DNA of 64,000 nucleotides from Ruditapes philippinarum. Lineage: Eukaryota. A program made the translations under genes and the position numbers. The stretch is from positions 62,001 to 126,000 of the forward strand of contig NW_026860005.1 in NCBI RefSeq assembly GCF_026571515.1, given 5' to 3'. Numbering within the stretch: position 1 is the first letter of the stretch; the number at the start of each line of letters is the position of its first letter. The notes under the pieces are model-generated. The model did not search any database, was not told the DNA's origin, and saw nothing but the letters and a program-made list of their open reading frames with translations. Shown here in pieces: positions 16,091 through 61,363 of the stretch.

Positions 16091-16629
16091 TTTCATTGCC
16101 ATGAGCCTAGATATATACATACATGTATATGACATGTAAAATTGCTGTGTGAACTGAATACGAAGGATGATAACTGGCCCCGCCCCTAAGTACATGTGGC
16201 GCAATTGTACATTTCAGTTTTTAAGAAATATGACAGTAATGGAACTCATGAGAGCGGCGTATGGCCATAAGACCAGCTTGTTTTGTTGATTTTTTTTTTA
16301 CTTATTCATTTCAAAAACAGACATTACAGCACGCCAAGCAGTACAATCGAGTCCTAAATTTGTTCGTAGACACTTAAGGGTATGATTATTTAAAGTGTAG
16401 AATTTTACACAAATTTGTGATGATAAGTTCTGAAAATTTCTCTTTAACAACAAAGCGGATTTTGACCAAACGACCAATTGGATTGAAGTTCATTCGAACT
16501 ATGGAGACATTCTTCATAATCGTAACTCGTCGCAACACAAAAACTGTGAATTAATTTAATAATCTCCTTATAGATTAGAAAATGATATATTTATGAAATG
16601 TTCGCTTATTTGCAGACTTCTATTTTTGT

Positions 16630-37800: not shown

Positions 37801-40800
37801 AATGTCATAAAATGAGATAGTGAAATTTATAAACAATAAAATGCTTTTAGCAAACTCGACTGTTTTTGTTACGATTATTTATCGATATATCTGTTAATAT
37901 GCTTTTTGCCTAAATGTGTAGGGATTGGTGCGACTTACTTGCACAATCTACATAAAAAAGTCAATAATGTTCACAGTTATTACATTCACATTTGCACATT
38001 TTACATTTTACTAAACAATAGTGACAACTTGGTAAAATGTTTGTACAGTTTTGTTTTCGAAGTGTATTACTTTAGACACGAAACCAATCATCTTTTATTT
38101 CCAGATGGTATAATTCGGCTGCATCTGTCAATGCGTTCAACATGTTTCTCACCAATCAGATGGGTAAACTGTTTGCTAGAATAACTAGTTCATCTTTATT
38201 TACCTTTGCTCAGCTGAATTTATGTAATATATTAGCCCTTTATAGAATTTTGTCATTGTCAGATTGAAGTAGTTTCAATATCAAACTACAAACCGTTAGC
38301 TATCAGCAGTATAGAGCCTGGTCATATTTCACGATGTGACAGATATTTCCTCTCGGTTAAGGATTAACCCTAAGGAATTTCAATCACAAATCACTTAAAT
38401 TGGACTGGATAGACTTCTTGCGATATAGGTAAATTTGGTTATATCTTGGTTTACCTGTGGCAAAAGATTATTCTTTTTAGGGACGAAGGATCTAAATTGA
38501 GCAAATATCTAGGCAGAGTGGCCTTAAAACATAATTCGAAATATATCATTTTTTCGCAATTTAAACATCTTAAACATCGGTGCATTAGTCGAATATGTAC
38601 CCTGTCCCCTATGAAGCTTAATCCAACAAGTTTGTGAATTGTAAATGCTCTGACTCTGTAAATCATGCATTATCAGGAATGTTACACATGCAGGTAAATA
38701 GACGTTAATCGTATATTTTGTCTATATTCATTTCCTATCTATTTTTAATTAATATCAGTTTATTGCAATTAAAAGTTTATTTGATGTTGATATCCGCCTA
38801 TTGTTCATTGTTTAAATTAGCCTGACATAATTCAATTAAATTTAATTCAAGTCTGTTGCTAAATACATTTTTGTTCATGAAAATGCATTTTTATTTCTGT
38901 ATTCGAAGCTTATATAAAACATTGTCTTTACAGTTTATCCAGCAGCCATTCTTCAACCGCCATATTACTCGTACGACCAACCTGAGTAAGATGCCTTTTC
39001 TCATCATTTATATTACTTTTTTCCCTTTTACCCCCTTTTTTCTTTTTTACGTCAATTTAACACAGTTTTGTTATATCTCGCCAATCGGCACATTTAGACA
39101 GCTTTTTCTGATAATAAAATGATAAAATTAAGTATTTAGCCTTTGCGATAATCAAAATGGAACTTTGTGGTAATTAAAATGGATCTGTGCTATAATGAAA
39201 CACAATTCTAGTATTCACGAAATATCTTTCCCCACAATATATTAAGTTCTTTTTTGGTCTTCTATATGGCATATTAAACTGTATTTTATAGTGGGTGAAC
39301 ATTTTCTTAAGGCGGTTAATAACGGTCGAATTACTAGAAAACATTTGTAAACATTGTGACATGATCAAGAAATGTTTTATTAGACAGTTATTTAAGCATT
39401 TTCGTGATCTAAATAAGCATTGATATATTTAAAAATTACACAGGTACTTGAATTATGGTGGAATAGGTAGTGTTATAGGACATGAAATAACACACGGGTT
39501 TGATGATAGAGGTAATTTATTTGATATCTCTATTTTTAAATTTATAATGTGCCATTTCTGATTAATTAAGATAATTATGTAAGCACAGGAAATACAGGCG
39601 TGCACAAAAAATCCCCCGTTACCTAGCAAGTCAGAAAAAAAGTTATTATTTTTCATCTTTTGGGACAGTCGTCACCGATACTTGGCAATGAAAATGCAAA
39701 AGGCCAGAATTAAAGGAAGTATTTTACTTTGAATAAATTTATTAATACAACATTGAGTTAGTACAAATCTACCTACGCCAAAATATTTGCATGTGGTCCT
39801 ATGGTCTCGAATGTTGCGTTTAATTTGCTTGAAATGGCGAGCTGAAATTGACTCATTTGCATCATTTAGTCATGAATTTAAAACATTCGTAATAATGTGT
39901 CATTTCAGCATGTGATTTGACAAAGACTTTGCTTATTGTATTTAAGTTTTATAACTTATATACATTTATGTACATAGATCAATAAATGTAAACAACTTGC
40001 ACGGTTCTTAGTCTTAGTCTTGGTCTGGCATTGACATATAACGGGAATCGGCTTAGCAATTTCCAAAATGATGAGTGAGACCTGGATGACAAGATTGGTT
40101 CCCGCGTCTGTATTTATTTCATTACTGTCAAAGATGTTGTTATTGATAGCGAATGTATTGCATGGGTTTGCTTAGTTGATATAATTTTGATATTTAAAGA
40201 GAAAGCTAGTTATGATCAAGACCAAAGAGCTCCATGATTTCATCTATCTGCTTCCCGGGAAATGTTATACAAAACTACAATCAGGACAAAGGTTTTTGCA
40301 CTTTCAACACTATCTTTTATTATTATTTTTAAAATAAGGTCGACATTTTGATAAAAATGGACAATTAGTTGACTGGTGGACGACTTATGATGAAACAGAA
40401 TTCAACAAGCGTAAACAGTGCCTGGTTGATCAGTACAACAATTTTACAGTTTCTGGTACGGACGGAATGAAGGTATGCTATTCACCGAACGTTTGATTTA
40501 CGAGGTTTGTCTAAAAGTTCACATAACGTTTCTTTAAAAATAAAATACAAATTGGCATAGCGTTTTCAAATCTTTACTGTGTAAATTCAACATATTTTCA
40601 CTTTACATGCACAATTTCAAAGATGTTAAAATATGGGTTTAAAAATAATCGACATTAGGATTTAAAAAAACAGACATTTGGAAATATTTTAAACTATGCA
40701 GTGAAGAGTTATCGGCGCAAGTTATCGTGCCATTTCGACGTTAGTGTTTTCTATGAAAAGTTCACTCAATTAAGAGGCAGATTAACTAACATCGTTTTCG

Positions 40801-43800
40801 TCTTTGATTAATAGCTGGTACTCGGCGTCCCGGATCTGTTCGCATTTCAAGAATGTTTTTTACACGCTGATGTATGATGTCTTCATGTTATGTTAAATAA
40901 AAACTACCAGATTCACCAGTCAACGATTTGGAAAATCTTACTAGGTGCTAGTTGTATATTGATTGTACATTTAATATAAGAACACGTTTTACGTTCAAAA
41001 CAAATTATAAAATAGTAATGACGAATTTTCAGGACTATTTAATCATTTCGATAGTATATACATTTTTTTCTGAAATGCAAATAATTCGTTATATATTTCA
41101 TAATGGAACTGTTATGCATTTTTTTTGACAAACCTCATTTAGTTGTTTATACTTATTTACATATGGATGATTAATGGTCAATATAGAAACAAAACAATTA
41201 GCTGAAATTTACCAAATATTTCCACTATTCGAGGATAATGACTGACTCGATCAACATTAATAAGGGAATAATTTAACTATTTAATTAACGCCCTTACAAG
41301 GGCTATATCTACTACATCATTTAACTATCTAACGCCACAAGGGCTATATCTACTACGATGAATTTATAACATAAAACATTTAAATGAAATATCAATGCTA
41401 ACATTTCTGCAAGGTATAAATATAAAAACAATTATAATATAGTTACTTACCCAATCTTACAAATATTTCGTTGGTTTTTTCCCTTAAAGCAGTCCATAAT
41501 AAGAAATGATTCTGTGTTACATTGGATAATCACTTCTTGTTTTGTTGTTTTCATATTTGTCTAATTTACTTTATTTAGATTAATGGAGAACTTACGGCTG
41601 GAGAAAATATTGCAGATAATGGCGGAAGCAAGGAAAGCTTTAAGGTATAAAACAAATACAAATATATATACAAATGTATAAAGGTTATATGTCCTTCGGA
41701 GATTTAAGGGGTTATTACTGCAGGTATACAAAGAATCAATTTGAAAACATGTTTTGAAATTTAATTTCACTTAGACAGACTCCCAATAAATATTTGTTTA
41801 ATGTTACATCACTTTATTTTCCCTGTAATACCAGTGCTGACAATTTACATTCATTCTTGTTCTATACAGAAAGTACTAACGTGCTAGTAATTGTACTAAA
41901 GTCTAGTTCACGGAAATGGAAACAAATCATACATGAGTCAGTGCTGTATAAGTATACATGTATTAGTCTTTTTTTAAGAGCCTTGTTACCATGTAAACAG
42001 TTACTCTCGAATTAGATAATCGTGTCTGTACTGACAGCCGGTATGTGATTCTTATTATATGCTCGAGCCATTTTGAAGAATCCCACACGCGCCGGGGGAT
42101 TTACTGTGATTTCTACATTTGATTTGTATATCCAAAAGTAATTTCCGCCCTGTATAGACGCTAAGGATAAATTCTTATTATACATTCCCGATCTAAGAGT
42201 AAAATTCATCCAAACTATTATTGATGTAAAAAGGAGATTAAGTGATTTAATGAAGTAGTATTTAAGACGACCTTATTGCTTAAATAGCCTTTAACATGTA
42301 TCAACCACCACTTTGGACAAATCACTTGTAACACATGTTACCTTTTACGAATACGATCCTATTTGCAAACAGGACTGTAAAAGAAACTGTTACAATTGTG
42401 ATTTGTAACGAATATGATCCGACAATGCTACGTTTGACTATATTCTGCCTTTTTTTTAAACCAGGCATATCGTAATTGGGTAAAAAGAAGCCGGCAAGGT
42501 ATAGAAGAGCAGAAACTACCTGGGTTAGATTATACACCTAACCAATTATTTTTTCTGAATGAAGCACAGGTGAGAAGTTTTTTTCATGAAGAAAAATACA
42601 TATTTATTTATAATTAAATTCTTGTATTCATCATATTATATGTCAGTTATTTTGTTTTATTTGTAATCTTTATATATCTTTAAAAGTTGGAATAAAATAC
42701 AAAAGTTTGATTCCCGACCTTAAATTAAAACAAATCTTTTATTTAGACTGACGTGGATTAACTGATAGCTTTATCTGAACAAATCTGCTGTAGTACCGTT
42801 ACCTGCGATCACCTATCAATGAGTTTGTAAAGGAAAATATGTCCCTGACTAACCTGAAAACCCCACCGCGTTACTAACACATATGCCAGACACATCTAAC
42901 TTCAAAAACTTCTTCATTCACTTTTTCATGTTTAAAGTCTGACTACTGCTTAAGCCGCGTGCTACGGGCGCGCTGACGAGAATAGGCCTGCAACTACCAC
43001 TACCGTCCATGAAAGCGCACCCTATCTCTCACACCAATCACGTCAACTTTTTCTACCCCCCGGCCGAAACCGGCGGCGGATACTAAAAATTACATGCTCC
43101 TCACGTCCCGTCGACCTTCGTCCTCCGCTCTACTACAATTGCCTGTTCTCCCATGTGTCTACATCGCTAGTACAGACAGCTTTATGTGCACCATTCGATC
43201 CTCACAATATGCTTGACCACCCTAGCCACACTTCAACCCCACATCCTCTCAGCATAGCTAGGTATAAATGTTCTTTCATTCGGCTTCTTTAAAGAGGCCA
43301 ATAGTATAAAGAAAAAAAGACCACATTATTTGACGGAAAAATGTTCCGTCTAACCGCGACATCGTACTGTCCTTTTCAGTGTTTCTCCCTTTAATCAGCT
43401 CAACCTTCGTCTCACGGTATATACTGCATATTCTAGATTGATTTCCGTTACATATTGTTAGTCCGCGACTCAACATAAATAGTAAATTACAAGTGGGAAC
43501 CAAATACGCAGCTACCTGGCCAGAATATCGCGCATGCGCTGAAATTCATCTGACCATGTGCGCAAGGTGAGTAGTCAAATTACTTATGTGTTTCAATATG
43601 TTGAACTAACTTTATATATCTACTCTAATCGATTTATTTTTATAAATAAGATACATAAAGAATAGTGTCTTTTCTCTAATGCATGTGTTGTTGCAGACAT
43701 GAAAGTAATACATGTTGTGCGTCCGTTGCGGGCCAAAAAATCTCCACTGCGTATCTTTTAGTGGTAACCGTGTAGACAACATTTGTAAAATGGCGGACGT

Positions 43801-46800
43801 GTTGATTGACCTGATAGTGTTAATTTTGTATTTTACTACTTTTAATCCTCTGCACACTGATTTTGATATCTGTTAAGATGGTATCTAGTGATTAACTTTG
43901 TGGACTCAAACTGTCTGTTTCTGTCATGGGTCACGGGATTCTTACAGTACAGTTTCAAAAGAGTGTGTATTTGCAATTGATAATTTGTCTTCGTACCGCG
44001 TTGTATCTTATACTATATAAACAAACAATGCACCTGTCTTCGTGGCTTACATAATAATGCACCGGTTATCGATTATGTAACTTAGTCTAGATGTTTGTGT
44101 AATTCAACTTGACTACATCTACATATCATAAACTATTGTACTAGCTAACATTTTAAAATTCCTACGGCTACTTTTTATTACTATTATACTGACTTCAATA
44201 CATTTTAACTGAGTTGCTTGTGTTTCTTTACGATAAAATTCGTGCCTACTCTTGAGAAGTGGTCCACACAGCAGAACTACAAGGCGGACGTATGCATGAA
44301 TACTGCAAACGAACAAGCATATCAAACCAGACACTACTGGAAGACAAATTAAATATTCCGTGAAGAACTTAATCATATTCATTCATTTAGCTATCACTTT
44401 ATGCTTCTGTTTTTAGCGCCCAAAGATCATGTCAACAATCCTGTGTCTCACTTCTACAGCTAAGGAAGATACCGTATACTAAAATATGCTTACCTGAAGT
44501 AAGTAATCTTATCGACCTTTTTTGTAAACAATCGAGGTATAAGTAAATCTTAATAAAGCTCTCATTGTTTGCAATCTTAATACTTATTCACTTAATATAT
44601 CCATAAGTTATATACAAATAAAATAAGTGCAAAGAATAACCGTAGTATTCTTGCTCCCAGGTCCTTATTTTCTTCCCCACCAATTCTGTGAAAATTTTAA
44701 CAAAACCAGAGTCGGATTAGTTTAAATGAATATCGCGGTAATATGGCCAATGACGTGGTGCTCTATGACCTATTACACCTTAGACATCTACCATGTAACG
44801 TATAACTCCACCCCTAACAGACTGCTTTACACAGTTAAAAATTAACTTGAAATCGAAAGGTTCACAATATCTTTATTTTGGAGAAATTAAGCTTGCAGCT
44901 GTGAAAACATCATTGCTCATTTCATGGATTTAATTGGATTATGATTAGAGATAAGTGTCTATATTTTTTGTTATTGAAAGGAAATGCTCGCTGTGAATAC
45001 ACTCTAGAATAAGAGTAACTAGACACCAACATCAATGATAATGTAGTGATATCTTTCATTTAATTTTCAGTACTATGGATATCCATTTGTTCTGGTGTAG
45101 ATTACCTGGGTTACCTAGAAAAATGAAATGGCCAGTAAAAGTGAAAGAATGGGCATGATGACAAAAGCACTTGTCTACTGTAGGTCTGATGATGCATTGT
45201 AAGTTTTTTTCATTATTCTTCAATTAATGATTATGTATTCATCTTTCTAGTAAGCTATCACATATATTAAACCTACTCTCTTTCAACTTGCTTTTCACAA
45301 TTATTAACTGATGGCACATATCACATTCAACTTGATATATGAAGATGAGGAGTCAGAGCCTTGATAACGTTACCGTCTGCATGTAGCATTTTTTTTACAT
45401 GGAAGTATTTTTGTTTCAGTTCCAACACACTTGTGAATATTATTCGTAATTTATTTGTAGCTTTAGTATTACGAGGGATCATATGGTATCTTTTCCTGGG
45501 CCATTTGAAACATTACAAAACATAGGCATTGGTATAGTACCAGTTGTTAGCTACAGTACGCACATCGCATAACTTTCCCAACGCACACCCTACCCCGCGA
45601 TTTTGCTCAAGCGTGTTCACCATATTTTGAACCCCCAAGAAAGGGTTTTCACGGTGATAAGCGGCCTCAAACATGGTGGTCACGGACACGATGTGTTGAG
45701 GTGTTCATTCGCAGTGATTTCACTGTGTTCTTTTTCTGTAAAAATCAACTCACCTGCCATTCCAGTGTAATTAAAAAAAATAATAATTAAAATCCATTTA
45801 AAAAACCTATTTTTAATGCTGCCTGATGGATCCGATTTTGACAAACATTGATTAAAAAAAACGAAGACCAATACACACACACAAACTATTTTGACTCGCA
45901 CTAAAATAATTGAACTAATAATAATCCGATGAAAATATTTTCTTTTCACTTGATGTTTACGTGAGCAATTATTAAAGACATGTATAATCTTTTCTTCACA
46001 AAAATGATCGGCGAATGTCAAAGTTAGCAACCTCTTTGATTTCGGTTGAGTAAAGTCGCAGCGTCTAAACAATTCTTTTGAAGTGTCGGTTATAGGCACC
46101 TGTAAAAAGGTCAACTTGTCTATTTATTAGAATCTACATGAATTTATATTTTCAGTTGTGTTGTGCATACAATTTAACATTTTTCATATATAATTTGCTT
46201 GGCACAAGTTTGATTAAATTAATATAAATTTATGCGAGTGTTTTAAAAATTGTGCATTTTAGCAGTATGGAATTCAGGCAATCTTGAGGGATAACTCATT
46301 TATTTTATTGTTAATAACTATGTAGACTGTCAAAAGTTGATGGATTAAATCTTTATAAATCAGAAAGGTAATTTTTAATCACCCATTTATATCAAATTCT
46401 GAAGACTATTTTGTTTGTCCGCAACATATTTACACAAAAACGCGCATTCTCATGCATATTCGGGTAGCTGAATTAACCAGTTTTAGGGGATTTTCGAAAA
46501 ATTATTTTACATGATTAAAAAGATCATTAGTCAAGACTTGTTGTTTTGTATTATTTGAGCCTTCACAAGTCTGCCATACAAAAATGAGAATAGAGAAACG
46601 CGATATTCACACATTTTCTTTAGCTTCCCAGCGTTTGTTTTGGCTTGGAACAATTACAGTATTATGAATTAAATAAAAGTGCGAAAACAAGGTAATATCT
46701 AAACATAACTTAACCTTTTTTTGTGCTTCAAAGCTGATGAAACCACAGTGGAAATATTATGAAAAATATTTGTTGTTGTTAAAAAATATCGAATGAACAC

Positions 46801-49800
46801 CGAGAATCATCGTGTGGGGACACCATGAACCACTGTGTGCACACTTCAGTGTCCTCTAAGATATCTGATCGTATCCGTGACACTGTGATTGAACATGCTC
46901 AATAAATTTTCGTTGCAGTGTTCGCATGGAAAAGGGAAGTTAACGCGATGCGCATACTGTATTACTGCTTTGTTTCAAACCTTTACTTTTGATTGTTCTC
47001 ATTGCAGTTAAATGTAAGAAAGTTCTAAAATAGCTTTTGTTATAGTTACAAACCTGGGTTGTCACTAGGTATTTTTCTTGGAAGGCTTATTTTGAATTAA
47101 AAGTTATATATTTAATTAGGGGTGTGCAATATATCGCAATATATCAGTTATCGCAATATATTCTCTGACAATATAATATTGCAATATGATTTTAAAATAT
47201 TGCAATATTTCAATTGCATTGTTAGAATGATGTCTAAAACATGGTTGAATATTAGCATTTAAAGAAAGAAAGGAAAAAAATCTTGCAAAAAAAAAAAATG
47301 TTTACTTAGCTCATTTCCGGTCTTGTTACAGGATTTTTTTACTTAATTTGTTTTTTATTTTACTTAAAAACAAGTTAGACCTCAGTCACATAAGGGGACA
47401 CAAACATAAAACAGGAATAGCTTATTTAGTGTTCAAATATTTCATTTCCATGATTTCTATATGGTCACAATATATTGCAGTATTTATTAAAATATCGCAA
47501 TATATCGCAATACCATTTTGTCTGGCAATACTCAGGCCTATATTTAATAACATAGAATAAAGAGTGTTTCCTTGTTTCGTGGCAGTCATTTTGGCATCCA
47601 GCCTCCTATTGACAACCCGAGTTAACTGTTATAATTGCTTGATTCAATGCATGAAAAATGTTCTGAATTATACATTCCTGTACAGATATTTTAAAATGCA
47701 GATGCCTACTGTATTAATTAATTTTTATTGATGTCATGTAAAGCAAAAGGTTGTTTAAAGTGAGCTTACTGCTATTGCCATGTACATTATGTGTCATTAA
47801 GGTGTTGCTTTAAAAGCAAATACATTTTACACCACAGGCTTAATTGAAACCAAACTTGAAGGATCCTTAGGTGTTCCCCTTTAAAAAAAATCAAAAAGTT
47901 AAATTTATTGATCTTAAAAGAATAAAATTATCTCTCAGAAGCCACAGGGCTTAAACTTAAGATAATTGTACATAATAGTTTAGCAATATCTTGCACAACA
48001 CATGGTTGTCATTTCATTTATCTCTGTAATTGGCTTAGTTAACTTAAGAATCTGTATGTATGTGGTTTTAGTCATAATTATAAATGTAATGTTCAAAATT
48101 CATCTTAGAATATGACCATAAAAAATGAAAATTTTTAAATAAATTAAAAAAAAAATTCTGACAAAAAGGATTTTTGTTGTCTAAATACTTTCATGTAATG
48201 AATCATGATAAACATTAAGGCTTGAAATGTTACTTTCTGGTTTGAAGTTGAATTACCATTGAACAATTTTCTTCTCATTTAGTTTGCCTCCTTACTGTTT
48301 AGCTTACAAGATTATCATGTAATCTTCTGTTTTTTATATATATTTAAGACTCTTTAAAGAAGAAAAAAACAACTCTAAAAGCTTTTAAAGAGGACATAGA
48401 CTGGGCCTTGGCTGAAGTCTTGAATGGTAAGTAATTTGCTTACCACAGTACTTTGAATGATCAGAATGATCTGATCATGATCTTTTTTTTGTGACATTGT
48501 TTTATCGTAATTAAAGATTTGCATGCAGTCTTATAATTAATTTTAACAAAAAAGAGTGTAGTGAATTGAATCTATAATCTTGTGTCATTCTTAAATTGTA
48601 ATTGTTTATGTCGATATAGACTATATACTATATCCTTTCTAATATACCAATATCTTTACACTGCCACAACCATACTCAGCCACATTACATGAGTGACAAG
48701 ATTCGGAGATTCCATATGAAAATGCAATTTTCCGGCTGTCAATCTCTTATAAAATGTTCGCTATCTAATGCGTGTCTTTATGGCCTCAGAAACAAGTCAC
48801 AATAGTCGAAATGCCACAAAGATTAGGACAGTCATTTAAGCAAGAAATATTTAATTTTACCAACATTAACCATCATAAGAACAAAGAAACTATGTCTTCT
48901 ATGGCCTCAAACTTAAATGGCAACAATAATGATGGACAACGAATGTACTAACCTAAGACTATCATGAGCACTGGGATAAACATCTCCATGATACTGTCTT
49001 ATCACCAATATATTGTTGTTGTCATCCTTTCTAGCGCAAACCAACAGAGTTGAGGAGAGCTGTTCAGATAATACAAATGACCACCCAATGTTGTGCACAT
49101 GCACAATCCGAAGCAGCAAGAACTATTGGATGCGATGATGCGTGCGGCCAGGAACTCAAGATAATCAAGTCTACACGTTGACGACAATAATCTGTGACAG
49201 TGACACAAAGAACCGGTAAATCTCTCAGACTCGATGCGTTGTATTGAGCTAATGTTACAACATTCAAAATCTTAATCATTGTCCTCCAATATTGCAACTC
49301 TATCAGTCGTATGTAAGGTATAAAGTGACCAGCATTACCATACATTTTTTCATGATATGACTGCATCTATGATTGGCCTTGCGATTAAAAAGCCACCAAC
49401 TGAGCACATGATTGCCTGAAGATCCATTGCAATTGCACATCAGATATTTTAAACTAAAAAAACATACACTCCTGCATTAATGTGTCTATAATGGCCTTTA
49501 AAAAACTTGTCACATATAGATGGATAAGACTGGAAAGTATGAAATGAAAGGCAGGTTTCATTTTACAAATTATTCCGTTCTGTAATAATATGTCTTCTGT
49601 GGCTTCTAAGACAAGTCACATAATGATAGACAAAGTTTTCAAAGTGGATTGAAGATTTCTTTATTTAATTCATTTATTCTGTTGTTGTCTTTCAGCAAAC
49701 ACATTTGTGGTGGAGAGTTGTTCAGGTGATTATGACATGAATGATTGTCACATGGAAATACAAAGCAACAACTTTAGTGGTAACATACAACATCAACGTT

Positions 49801-52800
49801 ACAAATCTGTTGAAAATGATAACTGTGGTGAGTTTCTGTTTTTGATTTGCAAACATTGATCCCATTTTTTCATTTTTTACATAAAAAAAATATGTTTATC
49901 TGTTTGCTGAGTGAAAAAGTATAAATTATATCTTAAATATTGTGTCTCAAAAAAAAAGTATTTGGTGATACATAATACAGTGTGTGTTTAAGTTTACAAT
50001 ACATTCTGAATCTTGAGTGTCTTCTTTGGCCTCTAAAATAAGTCACATGAAGATGGACAAGATAGCAAGATCATGAATAGAATTTATGTTTCATTTTACA
50101 AGTTATTCTAAATCAATGTGTCTCATAAAGCTACAATAAATTGGCCACATTATGATGGACAAGATTTCAAAATAAGCATGGAATAAAATGCATATTCAAT
50201 TTATTAACACCAATTGTTATTGTCTTATAGAAATCAAGCAGAATGAGGAGAGCTGTTCAGGTGATTCAAATGATGGCAATGATGATGACATAGAAATACA
50301 AGACAACACGTTTGTTGACAGAAATGATGGTGACATGGAAATTCAGGAGAACAAATCTGTAAATGACAATGATGGTGACCTTAAAATTCACAACAAATTT
50401 ATCAACGACAATGATGGTGACATGGAAATTCAGGAGAACAAATCTGTCAACGACAATGATGGTGACATAGAAATTCAGGACAACAAATCTGTCAATGACA
50501 ATGATGGTGACCTTAAAATTCACAACAAATTTATCAACGACAATGATGGTGACATAGAAATTCAGAACAACAAATCTGTCAATGACAATGATGGTGACCT
50601 TAAAATTCACAACAAATTTATCAACGGCAATGATGATGACATAGAAATACAAGACAACACGTTTGTTGACAGAAATGATGGTGACATGGAAATTCAGAAC
50701 AACAAATCAGTCAATGACGATAAAGTTGACATGGAAATTTACATCAACAAATCTGCCGATAGTAATGATAGTGACATAGAAATTCACGACAAATATGTCA
50801 CCAGCAATGACAGTGGTGAGTTAATGTCTTTTAATTTGAAAGCTTATTTTTTTATCCTTCTTTTACTTTCATAATAGCCTATTAATCTAGTAGTTGGGAG
50901 GGAGAATTTTAAATTTGTCTTCAATATATTGTGCCTGTTGTTTGGGTTTTAAGGTTTAGGTTTTATGGAACAAACACATACCAATATTTGTGCATTTAAT
51001 GAATAATATTTGAAAATGATATGAAATACAGTGTGTGTTTAAGTTTACAATACATTCTGAATCTTGAGTGTCTTCTTTGGCCTCTAAAATAAGTCACATG
51101 AAGATGGACAAGATAGCAAGATCATGAATAGAATTTATGTTTCATTTTACAAGTTATTCTAAATCAATGTGTCTCATAAAGCTACAATAAATTGGCCACA
51201 TTATGATGGACAAGATTTCAAAATAAGCATGGAATAAAATGCATATTCAATTTATTAACACCAATTGTTATTGTCTTATAGAAATCAAGCAGAATGAGGA
51301 GAGCTGTTCAGATGATTCAAATGATGGCAATGATGATGACATAGAAATACAAGACAACACGTTTGTTGACAGAAATGATGGTGACATGGAAATTCAGGAG
51401 AACAAATCTGTCAACGACAATGATGGTGACATAGAAATTCAGGACAACAAATCTGTCAATGACAATGATGGTGACCTTAAAATTCACAACAAATTTATCA
51501 ACGACAATGATGGTGACATGGAAATTCAGGAGAACAAATCTGTCAATGACAATGATGGTGACATAGAAATTCAGGAGAACAAATCTGTCAATGACAATGA
51601 TGGTGACATAGAAATTCAGGACAACAAATCTGTCAATGACAATGATGGTGACCTTAAAATTCACAACAAATTTATCAACGACAATGATGGTGACATAGAA
51701 ATTCAGGACAACAAATCTGTCAATGACAATGATGGTGACCCTAAAATTCACAACAAATTTATCAACGGCAATGATGGTGACATAGAAATTCTAAACAACA
51801 AATCTGTCAATGACAATGATGGTGACCTTAAAATTCACAACAAATTTATCAACGGCAATGATGATGACATAGAAATACAAGACAACACGTTTGTTGACAG
51901 AAATGATGGTGACATGGAAATTCAGAACAACAAATCAGTCAATGACGATAAAGTTGACATGGAAATTTACATCAACAAATCTGCCGATAGTAATGATATT
52001 GACATAGAAATTCACGACAAATATGTCACCAGCAATGACAGTGGTGAGTTAATGTCTTTAAATTTGAAAACTTATTTTTTTATCCTTCTTTTACTTTTCA
52101 TAATAGCCTATTAATCTAGTAGTTGGGAGGGAGAATTTTAAATTTGTCTTCAATATATTGTGCCTGTTGTTTGGGTTTTAAGGTTTAGGTTTTATGGAAC
52201 AAACACATACCAATATTTGTGCATTTAATGAATAATATTTGAAAATGATATGAAATACAGTGTGTGTTTAAGTTTACAATACATTCTGAATCTTGAGTGT
52301 CTTCTTTGGCCTCTAAAATAAGTCACATGAAGATGGACAAGATAGCAAGATCATGAATAGAATTTATGTTTCATTATACAAGTTATTCTAAATCAATGTG
52401 TCTCATAAAGCTACAATAAATTGGCCACATTATGATGGACAAGATTTCAAAATAAGCATGGAATAAAATGCATATTCAATTTATGAACACCAATTGTTAT
52501 TGTCTTATAGAAATCAAACAGAATGAGGAGAGCTGTTCAGATGATTCAAATGATGGCAATGATGATGACATAGAAATACAAGACAACACGTTTGTTGACG
52601 GTAATGATGGTGACATGGAAATTCAGAACAACAAATATGTTGACAGTGATAATGGTGGTGAGTTAATGTTTGATAATAAAGTTTTAGTAGTGTTTTTAGT
52701 CAAAAGTATGATTGAATAGATCTGAATATGCCATGTCAACTTGCATGTTGTGAATAATACATGGCATATTAATGGGATATTTATAGCCATGAAAAAGCCA

Positions 52801-55800
52801 CATATTGATGGACATGATTAAAAAGGGATCATAGATGTATATGCTTCGGATTTGTTAACATTATACTTGTAAACTTGGTGTTTTGTTAGCAGACATACAA
52901 CACAATGAAGGATATGAATATGATCATTTTAGAAAACTGACTATTATTTAATCATTATTGTCATGATGGTCTTAAGTTATGCCCTGTATGCAAATTCAAA
53001 TGCATCAATATAAAGTCACTTATATTGAAATCCATACGTTCTGACAGTTACTCATGTTTTTTTTTCAGAGTCTGACTTCAGCTATGATGATGATAAAGAT
53101 GAAGATTATGTCTTGCCTTCAGACATTGATTCAGACGAAGAGGTTTGTCCAGCACCAGACATGTCAAAGTTTCTGAAGAAGCATGTTGAAACCAAGATTT
53201 TGTTTGAAAATGTTAATGAATCAGCAGATTGCCTTGGTTGCTGCTCTGTTCCAGACATCCAGAAGAAAACTGCTGCGGCCAAGAATATGTACAAGAGAGT
53301 TACTGAATCAGCAGATTCACTTGATAGTAATTGTTATGTTCAAGGCATTGGAAATGATGCTACTGTTCCCCTGGAAAATGTAAGCGATTTAGAACTGAAA
53401 AGGTTAGATGAGGACAAAATTATCAGAGATGTGAATTTAAGAAAAATTTACATGCGAAAGCACATGAAATTGTCCGGAAAGCAAAGTCAACAGATGCGGA
53501 AAAAAACTACTGAAAGAATATATAACAATTACCACTGTTGTTTTTATTGCTCTAGATTTGTACAATACATAAGCACACACATGAAAACTCACAGAAACAT
53601 AGATGCTGTGCGAAACATAATGAAAATGACGAACCCAGATTTCAGTACAATAAGAAAGCTAGGAGATGATAAAAATAATCAAAAAGTAGTGGAGATGAAA
53701 GAGGGTGAGTTTCTCATTGCCCGTCGACCAAACAAACAACTACTTGGATGTTCAACAATATGGGCCTTGTCCCCATTGTAGGGAATGGCTCAACTTAATG
53801 GTTTAAAGAAGCACATTCACCAGTGTTTGAAAGGAAGCTCTGAGGATGAAATAAAAGAGAGTGTAGGCAACTGTGTCTTGAAATCCCAAGTCATGGCTGG
53901 ATTTATATCTTCAAAAACCAGCAAGGTCATGAGAGAAGAAGTCTTGCCAGCAATGAAGAGAGATACTGTTCGACATGTTGTTATAAATGACAAACTCATA
54001 CTAATGCTTGGAGAAAGTTGGTTGAGACGAAATGTTGACAATGTTGAAAAGAGAAAATACTATGCCAGTCAGCATATGCGACTTGTAGCAAAAATGTTGC
54101 TTGAGTTGAGAAAAATGAAGGAGTATGAGGAAGGAAATGTAACTGAACAAAATAATGATGACACAGAAACTGCACTCTGGGAGTTTCTGAAACCAGGTTG
54201 TTTTGACAAGATTGTTGATGCTTCCCTTCAAGTTTCATTGCCAGATATGGATGACATGAGTGAACTGAAAGCACCCAAGTAATGCTATAAAATTGAAGTA
54301 CGATCTGAAACGATTGGTCAATATGAAGTATGCCTTTCTGATGAAAACAAACCAAGAAGGCAGAGAAGTCTCTGATTGTAAATCGTTCCTGGAGCTAATG
54401 AATTTAGAATGGAGTGAAAGAGTAACAAAGATTGCCAGGACTATCCTGCAGAAGAGAAAGTACATAGAAAGCAAAGACTTGCCTTCACCTGATGACATTG
54501 AAAAGTTGACTAAATATCTTGTGTCACAATTAGAGTCTATGGAACTGATCCCAGACAATTACATGAAAATTAATGCTCTGTGTCAAACACGCTTGATGAT
54601 GTATAACAAAAGGCGTTCAGGAGAACTTGAAGTAATTAGGTAAGTGATTCAATAAGCAAGTACATTTATTACATATAGTAAGCTTAAAAATTTGTGTTCA
54701 GATAGCTTTCCTTTTTTCTAATAGGTGAACTTAAAATAATATTTTCTTTGCAAAAGATTAAATAAAAGGATACGTTAACATCCAACAATTGTCACCTTAT
54801 ATCAACGTTATTTTGACTTGCGCTTGAAGTGTTTCAGTAGCTTGAAATAATATATTTTCTATCACATCTCAGTCTTCAGAGTTATGCAGCCAGAAGAAAA
54901 GACCTGTCTGACATTGACGAATCTGTGGCAGCTGATCTAACAAAAGTGGAGACATACTTGCTAAAGTCTCAAGAGTTGATGACAGTTCGAGGCAAGGTAA
55001 ATTTTCATATCTTTAAATATTATTTGCTTTCCTGAGAAATTCTGGTGATGAGCTTTTAGATCTTGTGATCCAAGTGAATTACCGATGAAAATTAATTGGC
55101 CTATTGCCTAAATGGCCAAAAATCTCCACTCAACTGAACATTAATACAGCTGCATAAGTAGACAAAAACAATGCCCTTCAAGGTCAAATCCCGGGCTCAT
55201 AAGTGACCTTGAACTTCAAGGTCTTCAAATTATTGTATTTTGCTTGATTTTTGCTATAGTTTTCTATAACATTGTTATTTATAGATGGATTGTCTACAGA
55301 CTTCACAATGCTTGTGTCAAGACCTAGAAGAACAAACTGAATTTGACCTTTACCTTTATATGACCTTGAATTTAGCTAAAATGGTGATAACTTTGTTAAT
55401 AATGGACAGATTTGATTGATACTTGGACAAAAAAAAAACACTTAAGGCAAAATCGACATTTTTCTTTCTCCAAGTTTGACCATGGCCTATCTATGACCTT
55501 GACCATCAAGGTCAAATTATTGAATTAAACTATAATTCACTATAACTTTGTTATAAATGGATGGACCGTCTAAAGACTTGGACAAAACGACAACTAGGAA
55601 TATATATAGTCTAGTATAACTGTTCATAATTAGTCTCTTAAGACCTGTCTATAAGTCTCTTAAACTTGTCCATAATTAGTCTCTTAAAACCTGTCCTGAA
55701 TTAGTCTCCTAAAACCTGTCCATAATTAGTCTCTTAAACCTGTCCATAATTAAGTCTCATAAAACATGTCCTGAATTAGTCTCTTAAAACCTGTCCAAAA

Positions 55801-58800
55801 TTAGTCTCTTAAAAACATGTCCATAATTAGTATCTTAAACCCTATCCATAATTAATTAGTTTCTTAAAACCTGTCCATAATTAGTCTCTTAAACCTGTCC
55901 ATAAGTAGTCTCTTAAACCTGTCCATAATTAGTCTCTTTAAACCTGTCCATAATTAGTCTCTTAAACCTGTCCATAATTAGTCTCTTTAAGCCTGTCCAT
56001 AATTAGTCTCTTAAAACCTGTCCATAATTAGTCTCTTAAACCTATCAATAATTAGTCTCTTTAAGCCTGTCCATAATTAGTCTCTTAAAACCTGTCCATA
56101 ATTAGTCTCTTAAAACCTGTCCATAATTAGTATCTAAAAACCTGTCCATAATTTATTAGTTTCTTTAAACCTGTCCTTAATTAGTCTCTTAAACCTGTCA
56201 TTAATTAGTCTCTTAAAACCTGTCCATAAGTAGTCTTATAAAATCTGTCTACAAGTAAACCTTACTTTTTTAGGGTGGAAGACCTGTACCTGTTATTGTA
56301 CCCCAAGATGTGAAGGGTCCATTAGACTTCATTGCATCAAAGATGACCAGAAAAGCAGCTGGAATAAGTGAAAGCAACAAGTACTTGTTTCCAAATACTG
56401 GTGAGCAATTGAAAAATAAAGTTTTATAAGACATAATGATCAAATACATGTCTTCTAAAAATACTTACAACCATTTTTATATTAGTGCTCATAATTTTCA
56501 AAGTTGATTGTCATCTGTTAAAGAAATGATCTATTATAGCTGAAGTTGTATACATGTCATCAGTATGCAACTAATACCAAGGTTTCAGATAAAAAAGCAT
56601 AAATTGTCGATGTTTATATTTCTGTTAATAACACTTGAAAAAGTTGTGAATATCGAACTAACTAAAATAATTGAATGTTTTTACCATTTGTTTGCATATT
56701 AATACATTCTGGAACATTTAATTTCGCTACAATTTCTGTTGCAAATATGTAAACAAAGTTGTAATATTGACCTTGCCTGTACATGTAATGTAAATATTTG
56801 GGACTCTTCACCTGTTGTATTTCTTTATCACACAATATTTATATGCTGTGTATCTTTGTCAAAGTATCCTATTTTTTATGTTTTTTTTTTATTTTTATGC
56901 TTTTAATAAAATCTTTTACGATGTTCTGCGTAATACACTTAATGGGTACATTTCCTTTCAGCTCTCAAGTACATTAGAGCATATGACAGCTTGAAGATTG
57001 CATGCGATTCGTGCAAGCTGAAATCGCCCCAGCGAATAACAAGTGTGGCCATGAGAAAATATACTGCTACCTTGTCACAGGTTTGTTTCAGCAGTTAAAT
57101 GAATTGATACCTATATGGAAAAATGTAGAGCTCATTAGAAGCCGCAAATTGAGAAATATGACATTGCTAAAATGAAGAAGAAATTGTCTTGGCAGCATCA
57201 TAAACCTTCAGTCTGTTGAGGTCTATGACATTTTCATTCTTATGAAACTTTGTCAGAATGTTTATACTGTTTAAATGATCATAGAGCTCAAAACATGGCC
57301 ATGTGCATCAACCCTTAATCTTTGTTAAGGGGTTAATGTTTGAAACAGTTTTTGTCATGACCCCTATTTATAAGTTTGCAATCCAATTTCTTCCAGCTGA
57401 TGAATCTTGATAAGTACCAGATGGACTGGCTGTGTCGTCACCTTGGCCATACAAAACCTGTCCACAGAGAAGCATACAGGCAAATGTCTGGTTTGATTGA
57501 GAGAGTCTATGTTACCAAACTAATGATGGTGCAAGACTTGAATTTAACCGGGCAGTTCAAGGGGCAGTCATTAGAAGATATTGATTTGAAAGGTACAGCT
57601 GTCTTTTATATATAAATTTTCTTGGTACTGGGTATATTTGCTTGCCAGCTTAGCTCAATATTTCTGACATTAAGTCTAAGGTCGTTTTTATCTCAGTGCT
57701 GATTCAGAAATCACATTTTATAACTAGTTAATTCTTTTTATAATATTGACAGTGAACAGTGCACATAATGCAGTCCTTGGAATTGACATTAAATTTTTTT
57801 ATTCTAGTATATTAATTTTGTAGCATGTTCATATTAATTGCAGATTAAGTTACAGTTGGTTGGATTTATCTGCAGGGTATTATTTAATATTTTGACATAT
57901 TGCTGCTAATTTAAGAATAATACAAGCGTGTATTTATGTCTCAGATATTGTGTATGGGGCAGATGAGCAGCAGGAAGGAAGAAGAGTTGATGAGACTTTA
58001 GACTCTGTTGATGGGTAAGTATATTATGTTGTGCTGTCAAGAAGTAAATTGGTAAATGTATTTTACACCTCGAAATGCTTGATGATACTGCGTGATTACT
58101 AGATGACTTTGATGTTGCTTGACTTGCAGCTTCTCTTATGGTTTTTTTTCTCAATTAAATATTTCTGAGGACTGTATCTTTAACAAAATAGATTATGAAG
58201 GACACAACATAACTAATTAGTCTGCATAAAAATCAGGCCAAGTGCATATTGTGGCATTGCTTCATGAAATCAATAATACAACTCGACATGCTGTCATTTC
58301 AACAATACATAGTGGCTTATTTGATTAGAAGGATGTTAAGTAAGGGTAAATATGTACCAAAATTGATGTAACATTGACTAGATCAATATGGTGTAATTTT
58401 TAAAGATTCTTGTATCAACTGTTTACAGTATACATGAAGACTCTGACTGTACTCAAGACAAACAGTCAGGAAAAAGAAACTTCAGTGCTATTTCCTCAGA
58501 TGAAGAAGAAGATAAAGTACATGCACCAGAAAAAAAGAAAAGGAAAAAGATGACAGCTCGTCAGAGATGGACTGATACTGAAGTTGAAGAGTTAAGGACT
58601 TATTCTAAAACCTACCTTGACAGTGGAATAACTCCTCGCAGACCTGCTTGTTTAAAAGCAAAAAAAATGAGTCAGGAAAAGGGTGGTGAGATTTGGAGAA
58701 GGGCAAATCTGCACCTAATTATCAAGAAGATCAGCAATATGAACCATAAGTAAAACCACTGAGTTTAATTAAACATTGTTCATATTGCCATAAGAATTTG

Positions 58801-61363
58801 TCCTTTAGAATATTGTTGTAATCTTAAATACTTATTGTTGGATTTTCATGGAAATTACATATAGGTCAGTCAGCTTAACACAGTGTTTCTTTTTTTAAAT
58901 GACTGGTTAAATAAGATAGTACACTTCTGTTAGCCTATTAATTTAGGAAAAGCATAGAGTTATTATAATGGGAGAGAGAGTATTACCATGGAATGTGTGC
59001 ATGGTACATTGACATTGTAAATCTGAATTTTGTAACCATAATTCAACCTTGTTCCTCAGATTTTTTTGTTTACCCTTGTTTATTCATTGATCTGAAGCCA
59101 TTTTCATCTAGTGTTCTTTATTTCTTTAGCCTGTTAAGGACTTGTTAGAAAAAATATAGGCTACCTAAAAACATTTATTTTTCATTGCAAATGTTGTTTT
59201 GTTCATCAACAGTTATTTTTCTCCATCTTATGAATAAAGTTATAAAGGAGGCACTCTGTTTTGTTTTGTTTCATTATGTGACATTGTGCATCATTAACCC
59301 TTCATAGTATTTATAACCATGTAAAATTTCTTAAAAATTTACCTATTCAAATAACTTGTATAACATGCAGAAATCGTGATGAAATATCAACATAATACAT
59401 GTCTGTTGCCATAACTGAATTTCACTAAGGCCATTTACTGACAGATTATGGTTACCTGTTGAGAAATTAGTAATGACTGCTTAGTTGTCCCAAGAAAGCC
59501 ATTAAGATGGACCTAGTACTGAGATATGAACAAAAATGTATAGAGAAATGCATGTAATCCAGACAAACAAAAGGAATTGTTTGTCTCTTGTTAAGTTTTC
59601 TACCAACTAGACCATCAAACTCTTATTTACAGTTCTTGTTAAACATGTATGTTCTATAAAGAGATTAAATACTTTTATTTAGACTCTTTAAATACGGACA
59701 TAAGTCAACACATAAAACTGAAATGTTAGAAAACTTTTTGAAGACACATAAAACCTAATTGAATGAAGTCACATTATCCATAGACTCTTAAACCCAAAAT
59801 GTTGGTCCGTCCTTCCGTCCGTCCGTCCGTCCGATATTTTTGTCCGGAGCATATCTCTAAAAGTATTTGAGTAATCAACTTGAAACTTCATAATTGAATA
59901 GACCTTATTGAGGAGGAGTGCAGTGCACAAGAATGATAACTCTACCCTGCATAATTTTTGAGTTATTGCCCTTTGTTATTTTTCAAAATTGATTTTTGTC
60001 AAGAGCATAACTCCAAAAGCCTATGAGATATCAACATGAAACTTCATAGGTGCATAGATCTCACTCAGGAGGTGTGCAGTGCACAAGAATGATAACTCTA
60101 CTCTTCATCATTTTTGAGTTATTGCCCTTTGTTAGTTTTCATACTTAATTGTTCAATTCAATTTTTTCTCAAAAAGTATTTGAGGTATCAACTTGAAACT
60201 TCATAGGTGGATAGATTTTACTGAGGAGGGATGCAGCACACAAGAATGATAACATACCCTGCATTATTTTTCAGTCATTGCCCTTTGTTATTTTCCGCCA
60301 TCAGTATTCACATAGGTTTCAAATCTGTAATCACTATAGCCTATAGCCATCAGTTTTCATTACCAAAAGACCTCTTAAAATGGAATTATTCTGCTGTTCT
60401 ACATATACATTCTTCCAATGAGCAAACACATTCGGCGGGGGATGGCCTTGTTGACATGGCTCTTGTTTATTTTGTTGTTGTTGATGTTCTTTACGGATTC
60501 AATGTTTTCTCGGTTGTATCTATAAGGCTAAGAAGATGCCTTACACTAAGTTATCACTCTTCCTATTTGTTCGTATTTCATACAAACGATGTAGGATGAT
60601 TACAGAAATGTTTATTGCCTTCCTTAGGTTTGGTGTGGTGACATGAAGAATGAAGAAAAAATTAAACAAATTCATACGGACCCTCACAGTTATTTCATGT
60701 TCAGGTACAACTACAATGTATTTGCAAATGCAATATGTATATTCACTACAACTATTAGGAACATACTTTGCATTTTCAGTCAATGAAAGAAAATATACTT
60801 AGTCCTTATAATGTATATGCATATTGTGAAAAATAAAGAGATTTAAGTAGATTTTTAAATGCAAAACTTTTTTAGACGAAATGCAACACCATATAGTAAC
60901 GTTAAATGAAAACTTTATTACACATTTATTGAACATATAAACGAGTATGTGTATTATTTATTTATAAATAACTTAATAATAAAGCGAAGTCATGCAACTT
61001 AAAATAGATCAGTGACTTGTCACGACTCGTATTGAACATCACTCGATTGTGCCCTTAGTATGCAGGCATGTCCCTTCATAACTCAGCAATGATTGATTAA
61101 TTAATGTTCGCTTACCAGCTCTATTACAAGTAGAGAAACTGATAGCGAACAGCATGGATCCTGATCAGACTGCACGCATGCGCAGGCTGGTCTGGATCCA
61201 TGCTGGTCGAAAACGCACTATGTTGGCTTTGTCGTGACGCGGCTCATTTAATCTATTTTTCAGAGTGGTAGGACCTCTACAAAATTCAGTGGAGTTTTCG
61301 AAAGCCTGGAATTGCCCGATCGGTTCTTACATGAATCCCCCGGACAAATGTTCGGTTTGGTAG
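25829..61363 (+). CDS. Neprilysin-like M13 zinc metallopeptidase, 20 exons (~693 codons; N-terminal exon unresolved)
   Basis: Exons 25829-25876, 26750-26911, 28094-28177, 28509-28726, 30305-30484, 31637-31723, 32511-32644, 34741-34837, 35455-35583, 36579-36677, 37111-37188, 37615-37718, 38105-38163, 38934-38985, 39444-39511, 40339-40472, 41579-41644, 42465-42569, 60628-60704, 61264-61363; all GT-AG, phase-consistent, no stops. Motifs: [81 protein letters not shown]. Confidence 0.95.
27210..27590. repeat. Degenerate minisatellite (AAAGAATGTTATAACGTTTTT-like)
   Basis: About 12 variable units within a neprilysin intron. Confidence 0.7.
27921..28057. mobile_element. Half copy of the palindromic MITE flanked by a 40-bp duplication
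   Basis: Flanks 27881-27920 and 28058-28097 are identical apart from 1 nt. Confidence 0.85.
29584..30274. mobile_element. TIR element carrying two convergent tRNA-like modules
   Basis: Imperfect ~30-bp TIR (TCCAACAATATTGATCTGGCGC / GTGCCAGGTCAATGTTGTTGGA); + strand A/B boxes at ~29708-29763; - strand A/B boxes at ~30085-30146. Confidence 0.65.
30630..31600. repeat. ~43-45-bp minisatellite (GCAATTATATGTGAACATTCTTTGAATCATTTAATACAAGGCA)
   Basis: About 20 tandem units, with near-identical units at ~31260-31400. Confidence 0.9.
31819..31993. mobile_element. Palindromic MITE with TGAGCC..GGCTCA termini
   Basis: Terminal inverted repeats plus the internal GATCAGGATCCATGCTG palindrome. Confidence 0.8.
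32760..34665 (+). mobile_element. Truncated, internally deleted L2/CR1-group LINE (RT fragments, 3' UTR, tail)
   Basis: [65 protein letters not shown]; ends with AATAAA plus (TATGT)n at ~34640-34665. Confidence 0.85.
33290..33506 (-). mobile_element. tRNA-derived SINE inserted into the LINE
   Basis: Minus-strand A box TGGTCGAGGGG, B box GGTTCGATCCC and (CAAA)n tail; 12-bp TSD TTAAAGCTATGC at 33278-33289 and 33507-33518. Confidence 0.88.
39444..39511 (+). CDS. Neprilysin-like exon with the HExxH zinc-binding motif
   Basis: [22 protein letters not shown]. Confidence 0.95.
40499..41139. mobile_element. Tc1/mariner-type MITE
   Basis: Imperfect TIRs TACGAGGTTTGTCTAAAAGTTCACATAAC and GTTATGCATTTTTTTTGACAAACCTCAT. 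Confidence 0.65.
43480..43800 (+). promoter_or_regulatory. Putative promoter/5' region of the nested YR gene
   Basis: CpG-rich; NRF1-like CGCGCATGCGCT (~43529); YY1-like AAAATGGCGG (43787-43796); donor CAAG|GTGAGT at ~43566; candidate UTR exon 44417-44498. Confidence 0.4.
45672..46827. mobile_element. Non-autonomous TIR DNA element in an intron of the YR gene
   Basis: ~38-bp imperfect TIRs CATGGTGGTCACGGACACGATG..GGTGTTCATTCG and CGAATGAACACC..CATCGTGTGGGGACACCATG. Confidence 0.7.
47117..47540. mobile_element. MITE with TAGG..CCTA termini and ATATCGCAATAT subterminal repeats
   Basis: TAGGGGTGTGCAATATATCGC ... GCAATACTCAGGCCTA. Confidence 0.6.
49970..52660 (+). repeat. Tandem exon+intron duplication (3 near-identical units) with internal 42/45-bp coding repeats
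   Basis: The intron block AATACAGTGTGTGTTTAAG...TGTCTTATAG recurs at ~49974, ~51025 and ~52254; exons encode DNDGD(I/M)EIQxNKSVN and [14 protein letters not shown]. Confidence 0.95.
53069..57592 (+). CDS. Zinc-finger and tyrosine recombinase core exons of the nested gene
   Basis: [20 protein letters not shown]; [18 protein letters not shown]; [13 protein letters not shown]; [12 protein letters not shown]; MYNKRRSGE; RGKGGRPVPV; NKYLF; [10 protein letters not shown]; [19 protein letters not shown]. Confidence 0.88.
55615..56245. repeat. ~25-27-bp minisatellite (CCTGTCCATAATTAGTCTCTTAAAA)
   Basis: More than 20 tandem units directly upstream of the 56274 acceptor. Confidence 0.92.
59803..60468 (+). 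mobile_element. 5'-truncated Helentron/HINE-type element
   Basis: (GTCC)n at 59805-59832; ~157-bp tandem units; 3' GGCGGGGGATGGCCTTGTTGACATGGCTCTTGTTT. Confidence 0.75.
60628..61363 (+). CDS. Last two neprilysin-like exons, displaced beyond the 18-kb intron
   Basis: [26 protein letters not shown] | [32 protein letters not shown]; joins in phase 0 to the exon ending at 42569 (..QLFFLNEAQ). Confidence 0.93.
61106..61246. mobile_element. Palindromic MITE family, partial copy
   Basis: Matches 27921-28057 and 31819-31993; ends GCGGCTCA. Confidence 0.8.

Follow-up and report, generated by a model that had tools for sequence, protein, structure and literature searches.

Why does one intron of a neprilysin-like (peptidase M13) host gene in the clam Ruditapes philippinarum run to 18,058 bp? 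The intron (42570..60627, + strand, with GT at 42570 and AG at 60626-60627) lies in the window, by which we mean the whole 64,000-bp stretch analysed (G000:C8492:62001-126000, in a 1.4-Gb assembly whose contigs carry C-numbers), and the window holds no N letters. An earlier note on this DNA had attributed the inflation to a tyrosine-recombinase (YR) element at 42736-59685, inserted directly into the intron and bounded by a 14-bp direct repeat. The intron itself is borne out, its flanking exon pieces being consecutive on the Peptidase_M13 profile (PF01431), one matching up to profile position 148 and the other from 149. A mobile insertion is indeed the cause of the inflation; neither it nor its recombinase is an artefact, and both have the character of mobile DNA. 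The extent, the surroundings and the target of the element differ from those first proposed. The element core is 43127..59804 (+ strand, 16,678 bp); its sole recognisable gene is a multi-exon YR gene whose product has zinc-finger-like motifs at the N-terminus and a three-helix domain at the C-terminus; and it is nested in a Helentron-type non-autonomous element (HINE), whose (GTCC)n microsatellite constitutes the flanking direct repeat. We consider it probable that 43127-59804 is a low-copy Crypton-like DNA transposon that integrates site-specifically into HINE (GTCC)n and hence is found nested in a HINE.

The boundaries follow from a search of both originally proposed ends against the whole genome and a full comparison of the copies. 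The right end has four near-identical partners (96-99%), two on contig C8517 and one each on C7258 and C9993, and these matches pass through the right 14-mer and halt at window 59829-59833. The left-end partners, on C7258, C4749 and C6664, start at window 43119-43124, ~370-390 bp past the left 14-mer. The core is the stretch homologous to the copies on C7258, C8517, C4749, C9993 and C6664, with unrelated flanks beyond. One colinear copy, on C7258 (88025-107250), spans window 43119-59831, while partial copies are present on C8517 (from 44835 and, separately, from 58412), C4749 (to 54778), C9993 (from 55442) and C5403. At the left ends a GC-rich hairpin is followed by (GTCC)n and then by GCTCTTACAATT.., or by the variant GCTCTACTACAATT.. 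in the window, and the copies agree base for base in the start GCTCT(T)AC.. after the microsatellite. The right ends read ..CCCAAAATGTT(G/C), then a (GTCC)n-type microsatellite, then copy-specific sequence; the terminus ..CCCAAAATGTTG stands directly before (GTCC)n and is likewise equal base for base among copies. Exact-pattern scans of the whole assembly return five right ends, every one continuing as GTCCGTC, and three canonical left ends plus the window variant, all four preceded by (GTCC)n. The microsatellite is therefore found at 9/9 ends, always in one orientation relative to the HINE. The element's two terminal 250-bp stretches have no inverted match of >=10 nt, and in that range terminal inverted repeats are absent.

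Within these limits the copies are not uniform. A divergent 5′ block (43127..46515, + strand) shows 76-86% identity to the other copies, as against 98-99% for the remainder, and has a CpG-richer start; the CpG-rich region described in the earlier note is confirmed by an observed/expected CpG ratio of 1.18 at 43000-43499 versus 0.70, above the average for the window. The C7258 copy has three extra blocks relative to the window, of ~1.1, 1.7 and 1.4 kb, at window-equivalent positions 46515, 48334 and 56470, which by sequence could have been inserted into the C7258 copy as nested elements or deleted from that of the window. Near the 3′ end lies an imperfect palindrome (59657..59690, unstranded) with 15-nt arms that are 87% complementary and a 4-nt spacer, 114 bp inside the element and containing the right 14-mer. 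This palindrome and another at 43282-43299 have a common core, CTCTTTAAA/TTTAAAGAG, and sit ~115 bp inside the right end and ~160 bp inside the left end, respectively; such paired-core palindromes are possible accessory binding sites.

The 14-mer itself, CTTTTATTTAGACT, does occur exactly twice in the window, with starts at 42736 and 59672. When the first 1.5 kb of the intron is compared with the last 1.5 kb, ~1.7% of first-order Markov resamples yield an exact shared 14-mer, so the pair is uncommon by chance, but it was selected post hoc. The left copy (42736..42749, + strand) is ordinary, ancestral intron sequence 319 bp outside the HINE, and a paralogous neprilysin locus on C510 aligns across it on both sides (76% over 102 bp). 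The right copy (59672-59685) is internal to the element by 119 bp, and the other copies each have it a single time in their 3′ region, ~120 bp before the end; the 14-mer is absent from the left flanks of the other element copies. The 14-bp boundary repeat is a coincidence.

The sequence immediately around the element is that of a HINE. On the left, 43055..43126 (+ strand) contains a 5′ sub-terminal repeat, a hairpin and a degenerate (GTCC)n. On the right, the HINE (GTCC)n microsatellite at 59805..59833 (+) directly abuts the 3′ end of the element and is followed by tandem repeats at 59836..60294 (+; 156 bp x 2.9) and by a right flank at 60295..60467 (+) with a 3′ sub-terminal repeat, a palindrome and the end CTCTTGTT. 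The HINE family with 156-bp repeats has >900 first-look candidates, and the 40 that were scored are 95-97% identical. Four intact members (L017-L020) consist of a left flank, (TCCG)n, 156-bp repeats and a right flank, with nothing between, at T-rich sites with differing flanks; they begin ATCCCCCGCCG.., the complement of which recurs near the 3′ end, and finish with the palindrome and CTCTTGTT. The window left flank aligns to theirs with a score of 53 versus 16±7 for shuffles. Together, 43055-43126 and 59805-60467 contain the full HINE feature set of sub-terminal repeats, inverted complement, microsatellite, tandem repeats, palindrome and T-rich site. Bivalve HINEs are known to carry GTCC/GTCY microsatellites and to insert at TT/T-rich targets without target-site duplication (PMC7492417). 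Two further (GTCC)n-type microsatellites on the + strand of the window, at 7559-7574 and 8349-8372, probably mark additional HINE copies in the same gene region.

The paralogous locus on C510 provides the empty site. There the equivalents of window positions 43013 and 60466 are directly joined: the empty site ends just before the window left HINE flank, homology resumes at 60466, and the block 43055-60467 is missing as one unit. Both the window site and the C510 empty site are T-rich and lack a target-site duplication. Since C510 joins 43013 to 60466, the inserted block, 43055-60467, is a HINE, that is, a Helentron-type non-autonomous miniature inverted-repeat transposable element (MITE), and the recombinase element lies inside its (GTCC)n. 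The HINE in turn splits a high-copy short repeat of ~230 bp, resembling a short interspersed nuclear element (SINE) or MITE, with its 5′ part at 42865..43054 (unstranded) and the remainder at 60468-60525. Many genome matches exist to 42865-43013, and an unsplit copy in C510 (L002 1410-1639) also matches window 6985-7211 and 15870-16092; the short repeat occurs several times within the window. The order of nesting is neprilysin intron, short interspersed repeat, HINE, and recombinase element in the HINE microsatellite. The simple insertion into the intron envisaged previously is replaced by this arrangement, and excision of the real insert (43055-60467) leaves an intron of 645 bp in place of the 1,122 bp once predicted.

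Other copies sit in other HINEs. On its right the C7258 copy is flanked by sequence of a second HINE family, whose repeats are ~334 bp long. Intact members of that family (L041-L043, L045) carry in succession the exact C7258 left flank, the microsatellite and the exact C7258 right flank, and so provide a precise empty site. For one C8517 copy (C8517a), the 3′ junction falls in the microsatellite of a third HINE family, with 170-bp repeats and a different hairpin, and the left flanks of the C4749 and C6664 copies have further different hairpins. Three unrelated HINE host families are thereby confirmed against intact copies. Because the element copies are 98-99% identical while their host HINEs are unrelated in sequence, the sequence comparison argues for an element that entered unrelated HINEs rather than one that descended with them. 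(GTCC)n microsatellites are a standard part of HINEs in the clam genome, which is why the element lies within a HINE, with the left hairpin on one side and the tandem array on the other.

The claim of an intron-containing recombinase-like gene between the two 14-mers is upheld by homology, although the count of 14 exons is not: full-length relatives aligned to the window identify six blocks, A-F (53050-58753), each flanked by AG and GT. Exon A (53050..54640, + strand, as are all exons; donor GT at 54641) encodes an acidic N-terminus, two Cys/His zinc-finger-like motifs, the core-binding region and Arg-I (RRSGELE). Exon B (54868..54996), with AG/GT flanks and 53-67% identity in tblastn with relatives P0004, P0005 and P0008, carries the catalytic Lys (RGK) at its end, and exon C (56277..56402) supplies the downstream part of the conserved RGK..RPVPV beta-hairpin. 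Exon D (56952..57083) contains box II (MRKYTAT), in which Arg-II is kept and Val occupies the His-II position; exon E (57382..57591) contains HLGHT (His-III) and the tyrosine nucleophile (REAY); and exon F (58406..58753) encodes a C-terminal three-helix domain with a homeodomain/Myb-like fold and then the stop codon. The AATAAA reported earlier is present at 59233..59238 (+) and is the sole one from the stop codon to the element end. Upstream, three tandem segments (50188..52719, +), each with an Asp/Asn-rich open frame of 45-bp repeats, are candidate upstream exons. For a claimed PWWP domain, the sole candidate exon piece (45042-45155) has no Pfam match, but its shortness precludes a decision. 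The long open frames of the element contain neither a reverse transcriptase nor any other transposase domain, and there is no endonuclease frame.

Many relatives, and many paralogues in the clam genome, end exactly at the exon A boundary; the intron after exon A is therefore old. In the window, exon A is broken by three 1-bp indels (53730, 53790/1 and 54277), and we infer that the window copy is defective. RNA reads without the extra base at 54277 exist, and these may stem from other copies. Two copies have an uninterrupted exon A frame, namely C7258 (538 aa, L022:5067-6683) and one of those on C8517 (509 aa). C7258 is the only copy open in all six mapped exons, C8517b and C9993 being broken in exon F and elsewhere. 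The introns would, judging from the conserved blocks and their flanks, be spliced out. An intronic array at 55620..56249 (+) comprises ~25 copies of a 25-bp unit containing TAG(A/T)CTCTTAAA and is present in other copies. Close to the 3′ end the motif is found again, at 59680 and 59781, and it has 5 occurrences outside the array versus 1.6 expected, and the similarity of the 25-bp unit to the 3′ terminus of the element is ~2.6 standard deviations above shuffles, a lead only. A stretch of ~32 bp at 55493-55526 shows 20-25x RNA depth with loose ends on both sides in 4/4 runs; it evidently belongs to a short repeat that is transcribed from many places and has no relation to the exons of the element.

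The recombinase protein is poorly served by sequence profiles. Pfam returns no informative family for the single exons, the intact 538-aa exon A or eight full-length relatives, with neither PF12012 nor PF00589 matching, and a profile search of PDB sequences yields no YR and nothing relevant. The fold was obtained from an AF2/AlphaFold model of P0008 (16-sequence alignment, mean predicted local distance difference test score, pLDDT, of 72), a relative with ~46% identity to the element over exon A (BLASTP) and 54-59% in exons B-E. Among solved structures, the matches of this model are almost all YRs and type IB topoisomerases, among them XerH, XerA, XerD, lambda Int, Cre, IntI, Tn1549 Int and Flp, with Foldseek probabilities of 0.95-1.0 (1.0 for XerH). 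In VIA comparisons with the model, XerH gives Z 12.9 with a root-mean-square deviation (rmsd) of 4.2 over 171 residues, and Cre gives Z 10.5 over 284 residues, covering both domains. A viral structure library returns almost only integrases, and the resemblance to viral YRs does not go further than the general integrase fold. The window exons hold RRSGELE, RGK..RPVPV, MRKYTAT, HLGHT and REAY at the Arg-I, Lys, Arg-II, His-III and Tyr positions, respectively. By modelled fold and motifs the product is a tyrosine recombinase, with a predicted catalytic activity. For exon F, the AF2 model reaches pLDDT 97 over residues 45-106 and forms a three-helix bundle whose best structural matches are Myb/telobox proteins and homeodomains (Z 6.2, rmsd 2.0 over 56 residues, a weak match to a common arrangement); the ESM Atlas contains no usable match to this C-terminal domain. 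DNA binding by the exon F domain is a reasonable guess from the model.

A search of 1.84 billion representative proteins recovers 2,009 relatives. Those looked up by name come from the bivalves Mya, Pecten, Mizuhopecten, Ruditapes, Dreissena, Crassostrea and Saccostrea, the gastropods Lottia, Littorina and Elysia, and one nemertean, with no cnidarian among them, and all are annotated as uncharacterized. The clam genome has >70 more distant family loci, many with stop codons. No microsatellites lie beside the distant family members L037-L039 in the stretches examined, where the element limits are not defined. On C9993, a second recombinase-like fragment (G000:C9993 ~38446-38739, minus strand; reverse complement 25262-25555 of the fetched stretch), distantly related (27% identical) and with box II reading SLRKYIAT, neighbours the truncated copy, ~2.4 kb past its 3′ end. 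The clam also carries a large CryptonA-like population distinct from the family of the element, with at least 149 separate DUF3504 (PF12012) matches, many of which have complete HxxR, GH and Y motifs. An hhalign comparison with these clam DUF3504-type YRs is not significant (E 0.035, probability 1.5%) and aligns only box II to His-III.

Crypton-style site-specific recombination would be the simplest reading of these observations. A circular form would carry the joined ends with a GTCC tract and would recombine with a genomic (GTCC)n, the crossover falling inside the GTCC repeats; this would leave the repeat on both sides of the inserted element, in a fixed orientation. The encoded YR would perform the integration, and we infer its role, as we do the circular intermediate. 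What the sequences and the model do show is the boundaries, the nesting, the empty sites, the regularity of the target and the YR fold. The circle-recombination model has been confirmed for an active Chlamydomonas Crypton, CryptonF-1_cRei, and Crypton termini match their targets (PMC9977147). The reading also agrees with the microsatellite specificity reported for CryptonV (PMC8869645) and with the recombinases of endogenous nimaviruses, which target repeats (PMC10871703).

Several observations weigh against this model. The copy number is tiny (two full-length copies and about six fragments), and the regularity of the target rests on 9 ends. Several copies are truncated at their 5′ or 3′ side at ordinary sequence, which the model leaves unexplained. 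The circle or tandem-junction pattern was not found in the assembly, with an allowed gap of 4-30 nt only. His-II is replaced family-wide, with Val in the element and in the displayed relatives. The splice joints were not seen in four RNA runs, which covered exons and introns about equally, at 1-6x. The left HINE flank in the window and the initial 3.4 kb of the element are far more divergent than the remainder, which suggests a recombinant history. Finally, the order of events at the locus may be either of two: insertion of the element into a HINE that was already resident, or transposition into the intron of a HINE with the element on board.

A broader reading is that the recombinase family uses HINE (GTCC)n as a genome-wide attachment site and, by recombining the microsatellites of different HINEs, could also drive the unexplained swapping of satellite arrays between bivalve HINE flanks. 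Such exchange would then have left its mark in the mosaic 5′ block and in the mismatched halves of the window HINE, of which the left flank is unique in the genome and ~63% like its family and the right part 95-97% like it, and the 25-bp array and the Myb-like domain would form a site-and-reader pair. We regard this extension as rather unlikely.

Slightly less likely again is that the recombinase gene is passive cargo of a HINE or Helentron, captured as 'filler DNA' beside the microsatellite and moved only by rolling-circle transposition. The HINE segment just past the microsatellite is highly variable and Helitron-type elements capture genes with introns (PMC7492417), and the composite 43055-60467, which the paralogue lacks in its entirety, may have come in all at once. 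Capture does not readily account for a segment that is 98-99% identical, with base-identical ends, in three or more HINE families whose flanks and repeats are unrelated, and (GTCC)n on both sides is predicted by recombination within the repeat, not by a one-off capture. We give still less credence to the view that no transposon is involved and that a gene family derived from a recombinase, of host or domesticated type, has spread through segmental duplication or ectopic microsatellite recombination. The annotation of relatives as ordinary multi-isoform genes in Dreissena, Pecten and Crassostrea, the conserved intron positions, with many relatives ending exactly at exon A, and the active site that is non-canonical at His-II are all in keeping with such a family; homology among copies that stops exactly at microsatellites with unrelated flanks beyond, and the abundance of family loci with stop codons together with truncated copies, count against it. 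A retroelement that targets microsatellites by target-primed reverse transcription is highly improbable: three copies do share a common 3′ end abutting a tetranucleotide repeat and have differing internal start points, but no reverse transcriptase or endonuclease frame is found, introns are kept in all copies, the 5′ end is precisely defined too and also abuts (GTCC)n, and one copy is 3′-truncated. The original version, with the 14-mers as a recombination footprint bounding 42736-59685, has scarcely any chance of being right despite the rarity of the pair, being refuted by copy homology that extends 119-147 bp past the right 14-mer and starts 370-390 bp after the left one, by a right 14-mer that is internal in all copies and a left one that none of them has, and by paralogue homology that crosses the left 14-mer.

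The Crypton-like transposon that we favour matters in several respects. The boundaries of animal Cryptons have been hard to define (PMC3212892), and the clam supplies a Crypton-like element with clean limits, for which the empty sites are exact and the target, a 4-nt repeat, is defined. As a transposon living inside the microsatellite of another transposon, it follows a 'safe harbour' strategy. This strategy is known mainly from non-LTR (long terminal repeat) retrotransposons. The analysis also gives a fold and a likely role to a large 'uncharacterized protein' family of ~2,000 relatives without a Pfam entry, and it makes available, from an animal genome, a recombinase with its site that can be put to the test. 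For annotation, it accounts for an intron of outlying length and cautions that such recombinase genes may be labelled as host genes.

How does the element compare with known systems? Its host MITE has all the parts of a HINE (Cg_HINE, PMC7492417; DINE-1, PMC4067079), including ~156-bp repeats, the GTCC microsatellite and sub-terminal repeats; the HINE serves as the landing pad and is distinct from the recombinase element. No insert that codes for protein is reported in the HINE microsatellite in the HINE literature compared (PMC7492417, PMC4067079). A DIRS/Ngaro/PAT retrotransposon was rejected, as reverse transcriptase, RNase H, methyltransferase and terminal or split repeats are absent and introns are kept in all copies. 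A Starship was likewise rejected, given a YR without a Pfam match (DUF3435 included), an animal host, a single gene and a YR gene in the 3′ half, and so was a phage integrase or an integrase of an integrative and conjugative element (PF00589), with which there is no sequence-level match and only the fold is in common. Closer in some respects are the YRs of endogenous nimaviruses of crustaceans (PMC10871703), which are animal YRs with C2H2-type zinc-binding motifs, some of them multi-exon, and which direct integration into (TAACC)n or 28S ribosomal DNA, a comparable simple-repeat targeting. They are, however, cargo of viral genomes of hundreds of kb, whereas the clam element has a single gene and no viral genes.

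The likeness to Cryptons is more extensive. As in the classical CryptonF/S/A/I (PMC3212892, PMC9977147), the clam element has a YR, tolerates introns and lacks a reverse transcriptase, terminal inverted repeats, long terminal repeats and split repeats, and a short sequence common to terminus and target becomes the flanking direct repeat. The Crypton-like behaviour foreseen in the earlier note therefore stands as regards short direct repeats at the ends and the lack of terminal inverted or long terminal repeats, with the difference that the repeat is (GTCC)n and not the 14-mer. The clam element is much larger than classical Cryptons, and animal CryptonA/I are DUF3504-related and have neither a C-terminal domain nor terminal repeats, while the clam protein has no PF12012 match. 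The nearest counterpart by target is CryptonV, described as a Crypton group of cnidarians with target-site specificity and with some families in microsatellites (Kapitonov & Jurka 2012, Repbase Reports 12:2034, as cited in PMC8869645), and to the extent of that citation the 'CryptonV' suggested in the earlier note fits. So far as CryptonV is characterized there, both are DNA elements that encode only a YR and are specific for microsatellites, a likeness of target specificity and not of YR sequence. Within the same limits, the clam element differs in belonging to Mollusca, in targeting the (GTCC)n of HINE MITEs, and in its 16.7-kb length, its at least six exons and its extra domains. By that account microsatellite-specific Cryptons are already known from cnidarians, and the clam element adds a variant to their kind.

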